Of a DNA stretch of 64,000 nucleotides, positions 7,835-48,473 are shown piece after piece. The stretch lies in IMG/VR virus record IMGVR_UViG_3300037042_006844, positions 62,001 through 126,000 of that record, one strand, 5' to 3'. The position numbers and the translations under genes were made by a program. The notes beneath the pieces are model-generated. The model was not told the DNA's origin, made no database searches, and worked only from the letters and a program-made list of their open reading frames with translations. Positions within the stretch are counted from its first letter, which is position 1; every line of letters begins with the position of its first letter.

Positions 7835-8141
7835 TAGGTTTATCTTTGGTTAATAGAAGATTCTGCACTGCAACGAGCCGACCACAAAACTCATATTGTT
7901 CGGTGGAAATGTAATACTTGTAGATGTTATCCAAATTTTCTTTGAAACTGGACACATTCAATATTACCATATAATCGGTATTTTTGAAGCTGAAGACTTC
8001 TACGTTTGACAAATTGTTTCTGATTGCGTGTTCTATAGATGAGACCACTTGTTCAACCAGTTCAGGTTTATGTTTTCCAACAAATTCGTCCAACGTATTG
8101 AACGCTGCTGGTAGCTCCTTAGCACGAAACTGTTTTGTCAT
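7764..8141 (-). CDS. hypothetical protein
   Basis: ORF with TATTTAT motif upstream; EQYEFC motif. Confidence 0.65.
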   Translation of the reverse strand: MTKQFRAKELPAAFNTLDEFVGKHKPELVEQVVSSIEHAIRNNLSNVEVFSFKNTDYMVILNVSSFKENLDNIYKYYISTEQYEFCGRLVAVQNLLLTKDKPNEQKKRHKPKSPSKLKNKRHNTN

Positions 8142-10190: not shown

Positions 10191-10571
10191 TGGACGTAAC
10201 GGGAGTTGAACCCGTGTCTTTAAGAACTGTTAGCTCCGGACTACATGTGTATGCAGTTTGAATTTGTTAGGAAATGCAATCGAAACTACCAAAAATGCAC
10301 TTCTTAGGATTTGCTGTATTTCGATTGAAACCACAGATCAACTTTTTCAATCATAGTTCGTAAATGACATTTGTTTCGGCTACCGAACGATCACCGAACA
10401 AACGGACAACCTTTATTAGGCTGCAACTGCTGCGACATTCTCGTAAGAGAAGTCATAGCTCACTACATTTTCCTTAGCGGTTAATGTTTAGATAGATTTT
10501 TTAGGAAGCCAACTATCATCTTCCACATGCCCATTGCGAACGCACTCTTAAATCGAAACCAGTATACGCCC
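10191..10571 (-). ncRNA. ssrA: tmRNA, tag peptide AKENVVSYDFSYENVAAVAA*
   Basis: Acceptor GGGCGTA/TACGTCC with G3.U70, T arm GGGTTCAACTCCC, tag ORF 10478-10416 ending AA*; CCA not encoded. Confidence 0.92.
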
Positions 10572-15171: not shown

Positions 15172-15678
15172 TTAAATTTTCTTTTCTACCGTATAACCGT
15201 TGTGTATAAGAACCTCTTTACACAATTTTATAAAATCTTCTACTAACAAATCGCCTTTTGCCATATTAGCTTCTTTACAAGCCAACCCTAAATTTGTTAT
15301 TTCACATCCACCATTTTTCGACACAGGAATAATATGGTCACAATTATAGGTTTTTGGTTCTAATAAGTCAATCTTTCTTCCTGTTAAGTAACATACAGGA
15401 GTTTCTAACACTTTCTCTTTGAATTCTTTTGAAGAAAAGACTAGATCGGCTCTTTTTCCTTTACAATTTCTATTTCCATTTATAAAACTAAAATTGTCTT
15501 TTTTCCTTTTAAGAATTCCATTTAGAGTTTTTTTATAACTCTTAAATCTAATTTTTGACTTTTCTTTTTGTCCTATACCGCAATGATATGCTATAGTTCC
15601 TTTAGAACAACCTAAAAGTTTTCGTATTTCAGCATACGATCTGCCTTCACTTCTCAATCTTAATATGTTTTCTTTCAT
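15172..15678 (-). CDS. HNH homing endonuclease with N-terminal HTH
   Basis: GRSYAEIRKLLGCSKGTI; CYLTG...DHIIPVSKNG..EITNLGLACKEANMAK. Confidence 0.85.
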   Translation of the reverse strand: MKENILRLRSEGRSYAEIRKLLGCSKGTIAYHCGIGQKEKSKIRFKSYKKTLNGILKRKKDNFSFINGNRNCKGKRADLVFSSKEFKEKVLETPVCYLTGRKIDLLEPKTYNCDHIIPVSKNGGCEITNLGLACKEANMAKGDLLVEDFIKLCKEVLIHNGYTVEKKI

Positions 15679-16351: not shown

Positions 16352-16912
16352 TCAAAACTTTTCGAGTGTGATTACGTCCAGCCCATTTTTCCATGCGTTT
16401 AGGTAATTCTCACTTTTTTGTTTGTTCCGCATATCCCACACGGTTGTTGCACCTACGCACGGATCAATCAACTCAAGCAAACTTGGAGTCCAAGTCGGAT
16501 CAACGATGTCTTCAAGAACTAAAATACCACCAGATTTAACTTTTGGCAAGTAGTTTTTCAAAAAGAACACCATCGACTCATATGAATGAGGACCGTCGTC
16601 TATCACTATATCAAAAAAATTGTTCTGAAACAAATTCGCGGATTCAATCGTGTATCCGTCTCTTTGCATAAACGTAATTCGACTTTTGTCTACGAAATTA
16701 CAATCGTTTATGTCCATCCCATATATTTGGGCATTTGTAAAAAAATCTCTCCATGTTGTGATCGATCCGCCGCTTCCGACTCCCAACTCTAGCACGTTTG
16801 CTGTGGAGTGTTGTCTAGGAGAAAAGAGTTTATCATAAAACTCGTCATAATATCCTAAAACTTCTTTGTCGGTTCGCGGTCCTATTTGAATTGAAAACTC
16901 TTTGAATGTCAT
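16352..16912 (-). CDS. class I SAM methyltransferase (TDK...VLELGV...IDDGPH family)
   Basis: LELGVGSG, YGMDI, IDDGPH, GGILVLED. Confidence 0.85.
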   Translation of the reverse strand: MTFKEFSIQIGPRTDKEVLGYYDEFYDKLFSPRQHSTANVLELGVGSGGSITTWRDFFTNAQIYGMDINDCNFVDKSRITFMQRDGYTIESANLFQNNFFDIVIDDGPHSYESMVFFLKNYLPKVKSGGILVLEDIVDPTWTPSLLELIDPCVGATTVWDMRNKQKSENYLNAWKNGLDVITLEKF

Positions 16913-17211: not shown

Positions 17212-17285
17212 TGGTAGGCAGTAGTGGAGTCGAACCACTCATTTACGGATGTAAACCGAACGTTATACCGATTAACTAACCGCCC
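17212..17285 (-). tRNA. tRNA-Val(TAC)
   Basis: cloverleaf, CCA. Confidence 0.88.
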
Positions 17286-17319
17286 ACACTAAAATTGTTA
17301 ACTGTCACTACATTTCAAC

Positions 17320-17420
17320 TTTACCGCCATATGGGTTCTGCTTTCGGCATATCACCCAGTGACCGATCAAGTGTTTTGCTTTTCAGCGGGGACACCAGAG
17401 AGAGTTTCAACCCCAACCAC
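17320..17420 (-). ncRNA. conserved structured leader of tRNA array 1
   Basis: Shares TTGAAACTC and TTGATnGGTC..TGGGTG.TATGCCGAAAGCAGAACCCATA with 35568-35685. Confidence 0.6.
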
Positions 17421-17426
17421 ATATAC

Positions 17427-17454
17427 ATCTTACCATATCTCACCAACTTGTCAA
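17427..17454 (-). promoter_or_regulatory. sigma70-type promoter of tRNA array 1
   Basis: TTGACA-16 bp-TAAGAT. Confidence 0.75.
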
Positions 17455-17479: not shown

Positions 17480-17614
17480 AAAAAAACCGTTGGTCATTTT
17501 AAGACCAACGGTTACTTGAGAATGTTCGGGAAAAAGCAACCATCAGCCTCAGGTCAAACTAGGTTGACCCGCGAGCACTAACAAGGATGATTGCAGACTG
17601 TTTTTCATGTTCAT
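17480..17614 (-). promoter_or_regulatory. leader-peptide attenuator 1 (MNMKNSLQSSLLVLAGQPSLT*)
   Basis: ORF 17614-17549; 15-bp antiterminator 17548-17534 with 17517-17503; terminator 17513-17480. Confidence 0.8.
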
Positions 17615-17723
17615 TAATACATATAACGAAAATTTGAAAAACGTTAAAAATTTCTGTATTTACACAACAAAAAACCGTTGGATTGCTCCAACGGTCGCGG
17701 AAATGGATTGATAATCTATTATC

Positions 17724-26998: not shown

Positions 26999-27028
26999 GT
27001 ATATATATAGATTAGTCGGTTTGAAAAT

Positions 27029-30768: not shown

Positions 30769-30842
30769 TGGTGGCAATGGCGGGACTTGAACCCACAACT
30801 TGTGCAGTTATCAACGCACTACTCTAATTGAGTTACATCGCC
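30769..30842 (-). tRNA. tRNA-Ile(GAT)
   Basis: cloverleaf, bulged anticodon stem. Confidence 0.72.
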
Positions 30843-35529: not shown

Positions 35530-35567
35530 GCTGTATACATATACAGAAAATAGCGATCTCAACCGCA

Positions 35568-35685
35568 CTTTCATCGCCCTATGGGTTCTGCTTTCGGCAT
35601 AACACCCACGGACCAATCAATTGATTTTCCCAGACTTTACCTTTTTCACTGGCGGCGGCTCAACAGATGGAGTTTCAAGCCCGTT
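35568..35685 (-). ncRNA. conserved structured leader of tRNA array 2
   Basis: Second copy of 17320-17420 element. Confidence 0.6.
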
Positions 35686-35701: not shown

Positions 35702-35821
35702 AGTCTATCAGCTTTTTATCACTTGTCAACTGTCTTTTTTCGCTCACCTTTCGGCTCGCTCGTTGGTCAACCTTTCGTCGCTCAACTATAATAATCTTAT
35801 CACACTTCCTATCACTGTCAA
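35702..35821 (-). promoter_or_regulatory. tandem sigma70 promoters of tRNA array 2
   Basis: TTGACA-16-TAAGAT (35821-35794) and TTGACA-16-TAGACT (35729-35702). Confidence 0.7.
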
Positions 35822-35846: not shown

Positions 35847-35986
35847 CAAAAAACCGTCACTCATTTCTGGGTGACGGTTGATATTCTTTCTTCAGTTATG
35901 TATACAAAATATCAGCGTCCACCCTTTCTTGTAAAGGTGGTATTATACCAATCACGCTTAATGTCATGTTTACAAACGACTTGCAT
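35847..35986 (-). promoter_or_regulatory. leader-peptide attenuator 2 (MQVVCKHDIKRDWYNTTFTRKGGR*)
   Basis: ORF 35986-35912; protector hairpin, antiterminator over stop codon, terminator AACCGTCAC/GTGACGGTT + U tract. Confidence 0.8.
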
Positions 35987-38148: not shown

Positions 38149-38188
38149 ATTGTAACATGATCTACTATATATAGTTAAATGTTACGTT

Positions 38189-39894: not shown

Positions 39895-40914
39895 CTATTT
39901 ATCGTTGAGCAAATAGTTGTTGCTGATTGCTTTGAAACTGAAATTCTCGGTCAATCCTCGAACGACCACACCTTCACGATCTGCGTTTGGATTCAACATG
40001 CTTTTTCCATCTGCATACGCCAACATGTTGTCCACCAAAGCCTCGGCGGGTAATACATAAGCCCACTCCATGACTGGAACCATGTTCAACTTTAACGTTT
40101 CCAATGTATCTTTCAACTCGCTCACAGTCATTCTACGACCTTCGTCGATGTAATATCCCGTAAAGAAAAACACTGTGCGTTTGGCCAATCCGTATAAATT
40201 ACCTTGAATGCCTGGACCAACCAATTCACCTTGCAACGCAATGTTTTTACGCAACTCGGTCAACTTCCCTGGCATTTGTAGTTCATTTGCTGCTTGCCAG
40301 AACGCATTTCCCTCACTGGGTTTCAATTCGAGGTTTCGGCTGCATACTCCAAACTCACCGTTGCGAAAATATGCGGTAAAACTTGAACCGTCCAATTTTT
40401 CAGTAACATATGCATTTTGCCCCCGCAAATCAATCATACAATCACTTGCATAATTCTGAATACGTTCCTCGTCGGTCTTTGGAATAAAAGAAGGAAACCA
40501 TCCCTTTACTTCTCCAGACAATTGTGCTGGACCTCCAGCTTCGTATTTTATCACGTTCAATGCCACGGTTAAATCATCTCCCTCTTTTAGATTAGGAAGG
40601 CTCCAAGGCAGCGGAGTCAATAGACCTTGAGAAATTTGTCCACACAAACGAACAGTTTTCAAACGAAATCCCTCTTGTCCATTTGCCATTTTTTTGAAGC
40701 AACGTGCTCTCAAAAATTCAAATTGCGGCATTACTGGCAAAAAACTGTCGATCTCATAATAAACAGCAAGATCGCCCACGTTAAATTCATTCTTTTTGAC
40801 AACAACTTTCCATCCCTTGACAGTTGCTACAACAATAGCGTCAGCACCAACAATGGGTTGAATGTCGAGGATTTTAACTACACTGGCTAATTTACGTTCT
40901 GGTTCCATACACAT
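39895..40914 (-). CDS. ATP-dependent RNA ligase, DRB0094/Rnl5-like family
   Basis: RKLAS N-domain, YEIDS, KTDEERIQN, TEKLDGSS, QGELVGPGIQGN, EGVV, FKAISN. Confidence 0.92.
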   Translation of the reverse strand: MCMEPERKLASVVKILDIQPIVGADAIVVATVKGWKVVVKKNEFNVGDLAVYYEIDSFLPVMPQFEFLRARCFKKMANGQEGFRLKTVRLCGQISQGLLTPLPWSLPNLKEGDDLTVALNVIKYEAGGPAQLSGEVKGWFPSFIPKTDEERIQNYASDCMIDLRGQNAYVTEKLDGSSFTAYFRNGEFGVCSRNLELKPSEGNAFWQAANELQMPGKLTELRKNIALQGELVGPGIQGNLYGLAKRTVFFFTGYYIDEGRRMTVSELKDTLETLKLNMVPVMEWAYVLPAEALVDNMLAYADGKSMLNPNADREGVVVRGLTENFSFKAISNNYLLNDK

Positions 40915-47775: not shown

Positions 47776-48402
47776 ATATATGTTCAGACCAGTTTGAAAA
47801 AAATGCCCGAATGGATCGTGGAGACAGATTACATGTTTCCGACTTCCGCGATGAGTCCCAACAGTTCATAGGGAATTAAACAGGACTCGCTAAACAGCTA
47901 AAACAACCATTATTTCCCATTGATTAGCCCATTCGGTAAATCAATTTAGCTGGCAGTAATCCATCTGGTGTATGTATTACATTTATGACGTATGGTGAAT
48001 TTCGGATTCCAGCCGAACTCAGTCCTCTAGCGTCTATTACCAGCCAAAGCCAAAAATTAAATTTGAGGATTTCACGCTTTATTCGTTCCGAATGAAGGGC
48101 TTTGACCCATATACCCCACTGGAGGGCGGGTGCTTTAGATTTAAGCTACATCGTCTATCTCAAAAAAATTGGTGGATGCTATCGTGACCCTTACGCCGGA
48201 TTTTTACCGGAGCAACATAATCTAACCCGTGGCAAAACGGAGATAACCTATGCTGCTACTCAAAGAAGGATCTGTGGTTTGCAATCACTTAGCCTTCTAA
48301 AAAATCAATATAGAGCTTTTCAACCCGCCCACTGAAGGGCTATGCTTAATCTTACATCACGCAAGGAATCACCCCTGGTGAAAGAGGCTCTATAAAATTG
48401 AA

Positions 48403-48473
48403 TGATGTCGGTGGGACTCGAACCCACATCAAGCCCTTGAACGGGCTTCTCTACCATTGAGCTACACACATCA
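48403..48473 (-). ncRNA. tRNA-like RNA, 6-nt anticodon loop, no CCA
   Basis: canonical D and T arms, arm AAGCCC-GTTCAA-GGGCTT. Confidence 0.5.

Follow-up and report, generated by a model that had tools for sequence, protein, structure and literature searches.

The stretch of DNA analyzed here (the window) is 64,000 nucleotides long and comprises bases 62001-126000 of a 303.5 kb IMG/VR virus record, which carries a T4-type major capsid gene (Gp23, 239 bits). It holds 33 tRNA genes and a tmRNA gene, all on the minus strand. Two long tRNA arrays, A and B, are each preceded by a sigma70-like promoter, and a folded RNA element of about 90-135 bases, here called the leader, lies between the promoter and the array. 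In array A the leader is followed by an A/U-rich linker and by tRNA-Val(UAC). In array B of the window it is followed by two tandem methyltransferase ORFs and only then by tRNA-Thr(UGU). The features of the locus are collected in the table.

Features of the window that bear on the two leader RNAs. Positions are those of the window; the strand is given where it was assigned.
Feature	Position	Strand	Description
Promoter of array A	17427-17454	minus	TTGACA, 16 nt, TAAGAT, with TG before the -10 box
Leader RNA copy A (type A)	17323-17414	minus	covariance model hit of 100.8 bits
S1 of copy A	17414-17411 with 17391-17388	minus	pseudoknot helix
L1 of copy A	17410-17397	minus	loop
S2 of copy A	17396-17392 with 17374-17370	minus	pseudoknot helix
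P2 of copy A	17387-17378	minus	GNRA hairpin
A-rich joiner of copy A	17377-17375	minus	precedes the S2 return strand
P3 of copy A	17367-17323	minus	irregular hairpin; upper part at 17358-17332 is the initially annotated hairpin motif
Apical hairpin (tip of P3), copy A	17346-17355		GCCGAAAGC
Linker	17286-17322	minus	A/U-rich, 37 nt, between P3 and the first tRNA
tRNA-Val(UAC)	17212-17285	minus	first gene of array A
Array A	17427-14111		leader-containing unit
Methyltransf_24 ORF	16352-16912		embedded between tRNA genes; 30% identical to the tandem pair
HNH endonuclease ORF	15172-15678		embedded between tRNA genes
Intrinsic terminator	17485-17513	minus	end of the preceding unit, about 30 nt upstream of promoter A
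Intrinsic terminator	17673-17696	minus	hairpin plus T-run, upstream of promoter A
Region between these terminators	17514-17672		about 160 nt with no long ORF
Proximal promoter of array B	35702-35729	minus	TTGACA, 16 nt, TAGACT
Second promoter-like site	35821-35794		upstream of the proximal promoter
Region between these promoters	35730-35793		short GNRA-capped hairpins (GAAA loops)
Leader RNA copy B (type B)	35547-35681	minus	covariance model hit of 94.1 bits
S1 of copy B	35681-35679 with 35659-35657	minus	pseudoknot helix
L1 of copy B	35678-35665	minus	loop
S2 of copy B	35664-35660 with 35624-35620	minus	pseudoknot helix
P2 of copy B	35652-35630	minus	long form
P3 of copy B	35617-35573	minus	irregular hairpin; hairpin motif at 35582-35608
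Apical hairpin (tip of P3), copy B	35596-35605		GCCGAAAGC
P4 of copy B	35571-35547	minus	hairpin of type B; weak terminator-like site at 35566-35553 is its tip
Two tandem Methyltransf_24 ORFs	35529-34885 and 34853-34254	minus	69% identical to each other; inserted between leader B and the first tRNA
tRNA-Thr(UGU)	34187-34096	minus	first tRNA after leader B
Intrinsic terminator	35852-35879	minus	equivalent of 17485-17513, upstream of the promoters of copy B
Third tRNA cluster	23410-22955	minus	0.5 kb, no leader
Promoter of the third cluster	23457-23430		TTGACA-16-TAATAT, about 19 nt before the first tRNA
Terminator of the third cluster	22950-22920		strong
tmRNA gene	10191-10571	minus	tag AKENVVSYDFSYENVAAVAA
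RNA ligase ORF	39895-40914		phage RNA ligase family phrog_968, E = 1.4e-86

The hairpin motif was found exactly twice in the window, whereas no match is expected by chance even with 3 mismatches allowed. The two copies align over about 200 nt at 76% column identity, and the core is 85% identical over 60 nt. Blocks upstream of the hairpin, GGGNUUGAAACUC..UCUG and UUGAUYGGUC, are shared as well. The initial annotation, in which two diverged copies of a structured RNA were placed first in the transcripts of both array promoters, is thus confirmed as an observation, with two corrections: the element is slightly larger than had been annotated, and copy B in the window does not directly precede a tRNA. 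A covariance model built from the family finds only these two sites in the whole 303.5 kb genome, and exactly two sites in a complete 295.8 kb relative. The apical hairpin of P3 is identical in both window copies but is present in none of the roughly 100 other family members, and even the closest relatives of copy A (L099 and L148; L numbers denote individual sequences retrieved in this analysis) have a different tip. This suggests recent exchange between the two copies within the genome, or joint selection. Other genomes sometimes share tips between their A and B copies and sometimes do not.

To find relatives, a neighbouring protein was used first and led to six related viral contigs. In five of them an 85-88% identical element lies upstream of a Val-Pro-Leu tRNA array, although the protein itself is only 45-65% identical. 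Three pattern scans of the viral collection then gave 47 distinct instances on about 50 IMG/VR contigs, and a metagenome scan gave at least 80 further loci, all 80 of which are matched by the model. The element was found mostly in freshwater; the sequencing runs that hold this stretch of the window are DNA runs labelled lake water, freshwater and sediment metagenomes, no RNA run holds the sequence, and among the metagenome contigs a few are marine or TARA records. Three further pattern hits (L083, L084, L086) are GC-rich coding sequence with no model hit. The only hit in bacterial genome contigs (L056, a Verrucomicrobiota MAG) lies inside a secretion-ATPase-like ORF of 575 aa with 58% GC and scores 17.5 bits, and is a chance match. 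Among GenBank phages no blastn match was obtained for the 521-nt region and no tblastn match for the 1021-aa neighbouring protein.

Two paralogous types were distinguished, and many contigs carry both. Type A has UUGAUCGGUC and is followed 19-37 nt after P3 by tRNA-Val(UAC), or by tRNA-Pro where Val is missing; tRNA-Val(UAC) is the first tRNA in 24 of 29 viral instances and in 26 metagenome instances. Type B has UUGAUUGGUC, a long P2 and the extra hairpin P4, and in most relatives directly precedes tRNA-Thr(UGU). A distant type C (L085, L087) keeps the core of L1 and all of P3 and also heads a 16-tRNA array. In nearly all relatives the promoter has the architecture TTGACA-16-TAnnnT with the -10 box ending 12-19 nt before S1, and the TAGACT -10 box is conserved in type B relatives. 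The exceptions to adjacency with the tRNA are cases where ORFs have been inserted after the leader: a methyltransferase in the window, L130, L091 and L092 (the insertion in L130 and L091 being the same as in the window), and an endonuclease-like ORF in L102. In one relative, L011 (contig 3300032324_000938), the same promoter and tRNA-Val array are separated by an unrelated leader of about 145 nt (7838-7982) with no model hit, no Rfam hit and a fold z-score of -1.6, while the type B leader is still present on that contig (L057). This may be a non-homologous replacement.

The structure was examined by comparative analysis, as folding energy alone is not significant against shuffled sequences (z = +0.9 and -0.16 for the two copies) and no energy argument was used. 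An alignment of 46 sequences (A3) supports an H-type pseudoknot in which S1 (GGGG with CCCC) and S2 (GGUGU with ACACU) interlock and the S2 5' strand abuts the S1 3' strand, followed by P3, a 45-nt irregular hairpin of four segments. In A3, 96.3% of 960 cells pair, against 35-50% when partners are slid by 1-3 columns; nine pairs change on both sides, and no shuffle out of 500 reaches the observed covariation score. The S1 closing pair occurs as CG (16), GC (16), UA (7) and UG (1) and is never unpaired; S2 column 24:83 occurs as UA (17), GC (15) and AU (8); S2 column 27:80 as UA (23) and AU (17); and P3 column 94:126 as AU (21) and CG (17). In the separately collected metagenome set, some contigs of which are the same assemblies as the IMG/VR records, the figure is 94.5% against 33-53%, with an alignment made by a model of which S1 was not part. 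RNAalifold predicts S1 and P3 unaided. In type C, S2 reads CUUU with AAAG by eye, which again pairs.

P2 behaves as an optional module. It is absent in subtype A', is 3 bp with GAAA, GUAA or AUAA loops and compensating stems (GCU with AGC, against AAC with GUU) in type A, and is 4-6 bp with a conserved AAGGUAAAG loop in type B; in subtype B' it carries an extra nested GNRA hairpin whose stem also covaries. P4 was examined in a separate alignment (A4) and is 9 bp with one bulged U. It is 100% paired, and 8 of its 9 pairs change on both sides. Its loop is CUGAGG in nearly all members and UUGAGA in the window. The same CUGAGG hexamer follows a hairpin in the region between the two tandem terminators upstream of promoter A, which may be a small transcript of its own. 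The unpaired parts of the leader are the most conserved, namely L1 (UUGAAACUCYAUCU), the AAAA joiner before the S2 3' strand, the GWUA/GA internal loop of P3, and the GGCGAU at its base. K-turn, sarcin-ricin and 11-nt receptor readings of the GWUA/GA loop were checked by eye and none fits the canonical patterns. A resemblance of GGCGGTAA in copy A to the RfaH ops site is specific to this one copy, since relatives have GGCGAT, and is coincidence.

These data refute the reading that the element is not an RNA at all but a stretch of DNA duplicated along with methyltransferase genes, a small ORF or a DNA binding site. Methyltransf_24 paralogues do lie downstream of both copies in the window, but those downstream of A and B are only 30% identical while the leader core is 85% identical at the DNA level, and in most relatives no methyltransferase follows. 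A 9-codon ORF with its ATG inside the hairpin ends at the same place in both window copies; however, the ATG is ATC in several members, insertions and deletions break any reading frame, and the length differences between subtypes are not multiples of three. Compensatory changes in five helices have no explanation at the DNA or protein level.

An Rfam scan, which had been proposed beforehand as a check, gave no hit at gathering score to the leader across the window with Rfam 15 (riboswitches, ribozymes, EAR/epsC, GOLLD, ROOL, manA and Y RNA included), and only noise at E up to 10 on either copy. Literature searches found no description of the element. A self-cleaving ribozyme that trims the 5' end or separates the leader from the array is very unlikely. 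Pseudoknotted, highly conserved small RNAs in phage tRNA regions have precedents, and HDV-like ribozymes next to phage tRNAs are reported to exist, but no ribozyme family in Rfam matches. The nested double pseudoknot of HDV-like folds has a hairpin between P2 and the P1 return strand and a catalytic C in the joiner; here no hairpin separates the S2 5' strand from the S1 3' strand, and the joiner is AAAA. A sensor leader, either a riboswitch-like aptamer or the binding site of a phage or host regulatory protein that tunes or times array expression through a Rho- or nuclease-dependent output rather than a terminator hairpin, is unlikely. The pseudoknot, invariant junction nucleotides and optional peripheral stems are typical of aptamers, and an A-rich joiner next to a G-C-rich S1 would suit minor-groove triples. 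Nevertheless, no expression platform is visible in type A, P4 has no T-run in most type B members, no Rfam riboswitch matches, and no candidate ligand emerges from the gene context, the downstream genes being tRNAs.

The initial annotation had also made the element part of the same control module as nearby attenuators, and this link is not supported. The strong hairpin-plus-T-run sites lie upstream of the promoters and end the preceding units. Between the promoter and the genes, type A has no G+C-rich hairpin followed directly by a U-run, and the weak site in copy B is the tip of P4, whose stem covaries and in which the U's of the window form part of the stem.

The invariant loops L1, GWUA/GA and CUGAGG are typical of a recognition surface, and it is conceivable, though unlikely, that RNase P cleavage at the first tRNA releases a compact stable RNA of about 110-160 nt that acts in trans as a decoy or sponge for a host or phage protein or RNA, resembling the spacer-derived small RNAs of bacterial tRNA operons or the unexplained T4 species 1 and 2 RNAs. 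Co-transcription with tRNAs would give such an RNA a defined 3' end through the A/U-rich linker and RNase P. The T4 RNAs (rnaC, rnaD) are small structured RNAs co-transcribed with the tRNA cluster of a T4-type phage, but they lie at the 3' end of that cluster and not after the promoter, and the covariance model run with filters off gave no hit on T4 70908-71171. A trans-acting RNA would not need two paralogues, each kept strictly at the head of one array for as long as the family has existed, nor a fixed distance from the promoter. GOLLD and ROOL are also structured non-coding RNAs often found next to tRNA genes in phages and prophages, with unknown function (PMC5737381). They are several hundred nucleotides long and have no fixed place at the head of an array, and neither matched in the Rfam scan of the window.

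A role in processing, folding or stability, in which a structured 5' cap-like domain protects the primary transcript from 5'-end-dependent nucleases or insulates folding and RNase P processing of the first tRNA, also appears unlikely. In its favour, the element lies at the very 5' end of the transcript, with S1 starting roughly 5-14 nt after the predicted start site, and a linker of constant character and a U before the tRNA +1 position are seen throughout. However, the leader is kept where 0.6-1.4 kb of ORFs separate it from the first tRNA, which shows that adjacency to the tRNA is not required, and the short third cluster, with a similar promoter, is processed without it. A simple protective stem-loop would not need invariant loop sequences or a pseudoknot, and since tRNAs are excised quickly, protecting the 5' end of the precursor gains little.

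The position of the leader points to a role in cis tied to the promoter rather than to the first tRNA. There are two paralogues, each at the head of one array throughout the family and at a fixed short distance from the -10 box, and they stay in place when ORFs are inserted. Units with a leader are long and largely untranslated; in the complete relative, array A carries nine tRNAs plus the tmRNA over about 2.6 kb to a strong terminator, and array B is at least 3.3 kb. The short 0.5 kb third tRNA cluster has a similar promoter but no leader. In relatives the tmRNA lies at the end of array A, downstream of the type A leader. Pfam searches of the phage record found no RNA polymerase beta subunit, sigma70 region 2 or NusG, and it carries a T4-type capsid gene, so host polymerase presumably does the transcribing; psbA was not found either. 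Long untranslated transcripts are the classical substrates of Rho, and rRNA operons and, by proposal, CRISPR arrays protect themselves with leader elements: boxA upstream of CRISPR arrays is proposed to block Rho (PMC7862264 citing Stringer et al. 2020).

What the analysis establishes is a new, conserved, non-coding structured RNA that forms the 5' leader of the two long tRNA-array transcripts in a clade of uncultured T4-like jumbo phages; that it is a genuine structured leader RNA is held with very high confidence. From the 5' end the order of parts is S1, the 14-nt invariant loop L1, S2, the S1 return strand, the optional hairpin P2, AAAA, the S2 return strand and P3, to which type B adds P4; an A/U-rich linker and the first tRNA follow. 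Its function, including any association with RNA polymerase, is inferred only. In the reading we favour, with a probability of about 0.35, the nascent leader folds as soon as it leaves the host RNA polymerase and acts in cis on that same elongation complex, either directly, as HK022 put RNA does, or by recruiting host factors, as boxA leaders of rRNA operons and CRISPR arrays do. This would make transcription of several kilobases of untranslated tRNA and tmRNA genes processive and resistant to Rho-type premature termination, and RNase P cleavage at the first tRNA would then release the leader. The initial interpretation is therefore only partly supported: an unknown structured RNA transcribed first from both array promoters, here and in dozens of related phages, is borne out, whereas processive antitermination or processing is plausible from position alone. 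No strong intrinsic terminators were found inside the arrays, and there is hence no visible read-through target; sensitivity of tRNA arrays to Rho is an assumption. Internal promoter-like sites occur within the arrays, which reduces the need for processivity, and one relative, L011, has a different, unrelated leader at the same place. The host may lack Rho or handle termination differently; none of 25 ORFs in the window has a Shine-Dalgarno sequence before its start codon, and many have instead a TATATRTATA-like motif within about 5-20 nt of the ATG (for example at 26999-27028, 35530-35545 and 38149-38188), which recalls T4-type late promoters and implies very short 5' UTRs.

Comparison with elongation-control elements gave partial resemblances. 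HK022 putL and putR are, like the leaders, two related phage RNAs, each placed shortly after an early sigma70 promoter of a long operon and consisting of two structural domains with conserved irregularities (PMC9378689). put has a short triplex in stem I, and here an A-rich joiner lies next to the pseudoknot. put RNA binds the beta-prime zinc-binding domain and suppresses pausing and termination without protein factors. On the other hand, put is about 70 nt long and made of two stem-loops in a V shape, whereas the leader is 92-135 nt with a pseudoknot, an optional hairpin and the irregular hairpin P3; no sequence similarity was recognised, and the genes downstream are tRNAs and a tmRNA, not mRNAs. 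The boxA (Nus-factor) leaders of rRNA operons, lambda nut sites and CRISPR arrays also head long untranslated arrays and are thought to keep Rho from ending transcription early. L1 contains CUCU or CUCC, as boxA cores do (E. coli GCUCUUUAACAA), and reads ACUCUAUC or ACUCCAUC against E. coli GCUCUUUA, a partial match to the E. coli boxA of at best about 6 of 8 core positions. No full boxA match was found, and the candidate sequence sits inside a pseudoknot loop rather than in an open linker. There is no conserved boxB-type hairpin, as P2, which could stand for it, carries GNRA loops in type A, is absent in subtype A' and has a different form in type B. EAR (eps-associated RNA, Rfam epsC) is a cis-acting structured RNA proposed to make polymerase read through distal terminators in a long operon, but it lies inside a Bacillus polysaccharide operon and not at the 5' end of a transcript. 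It remains possible, although unlikely, that the leader is a second, structurally unrelated class of factor-independent RNA antiterminator after put, a pseudoknotted nascent RNA that would ride on host RNA polymerase and make it processive over kilobases of tRNA and tmRNA genes and that T4-like jumbo phages would have evolved specifically for their tRNA arrays.

The RNA ligase ORF, together with the arrays and the tmRNA, shows heavy investment of this phage in tRNA biology. ARAGORN reported tRNAs with odd anticodon loops (a four-base GAUA, a two-base call, and CUCU in a relative) and a CUA-anticodon (amber-reading) tRNA in a relative, at window 30769-30842 and 48402-48473, L007 480-555 and L209 17502-17577, and several first tRNAs after type B leaders are not called at all. 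Large phages carry tRNA arrays of 20-35 genes, and little is known of how such long untranslated units are transcribed and controlled. A widespread RNA with very clear covariation, at a fixed place at the head of both arrays, makes this question directly testable through one element of about 100 nt. If the element acts on RNA polymerase, it would be a new RNA fold for elongation control and a possible tool for expressing long non-coding arrays; if it does not, it is still a new phage RNA family that should be added to RNA family databases.
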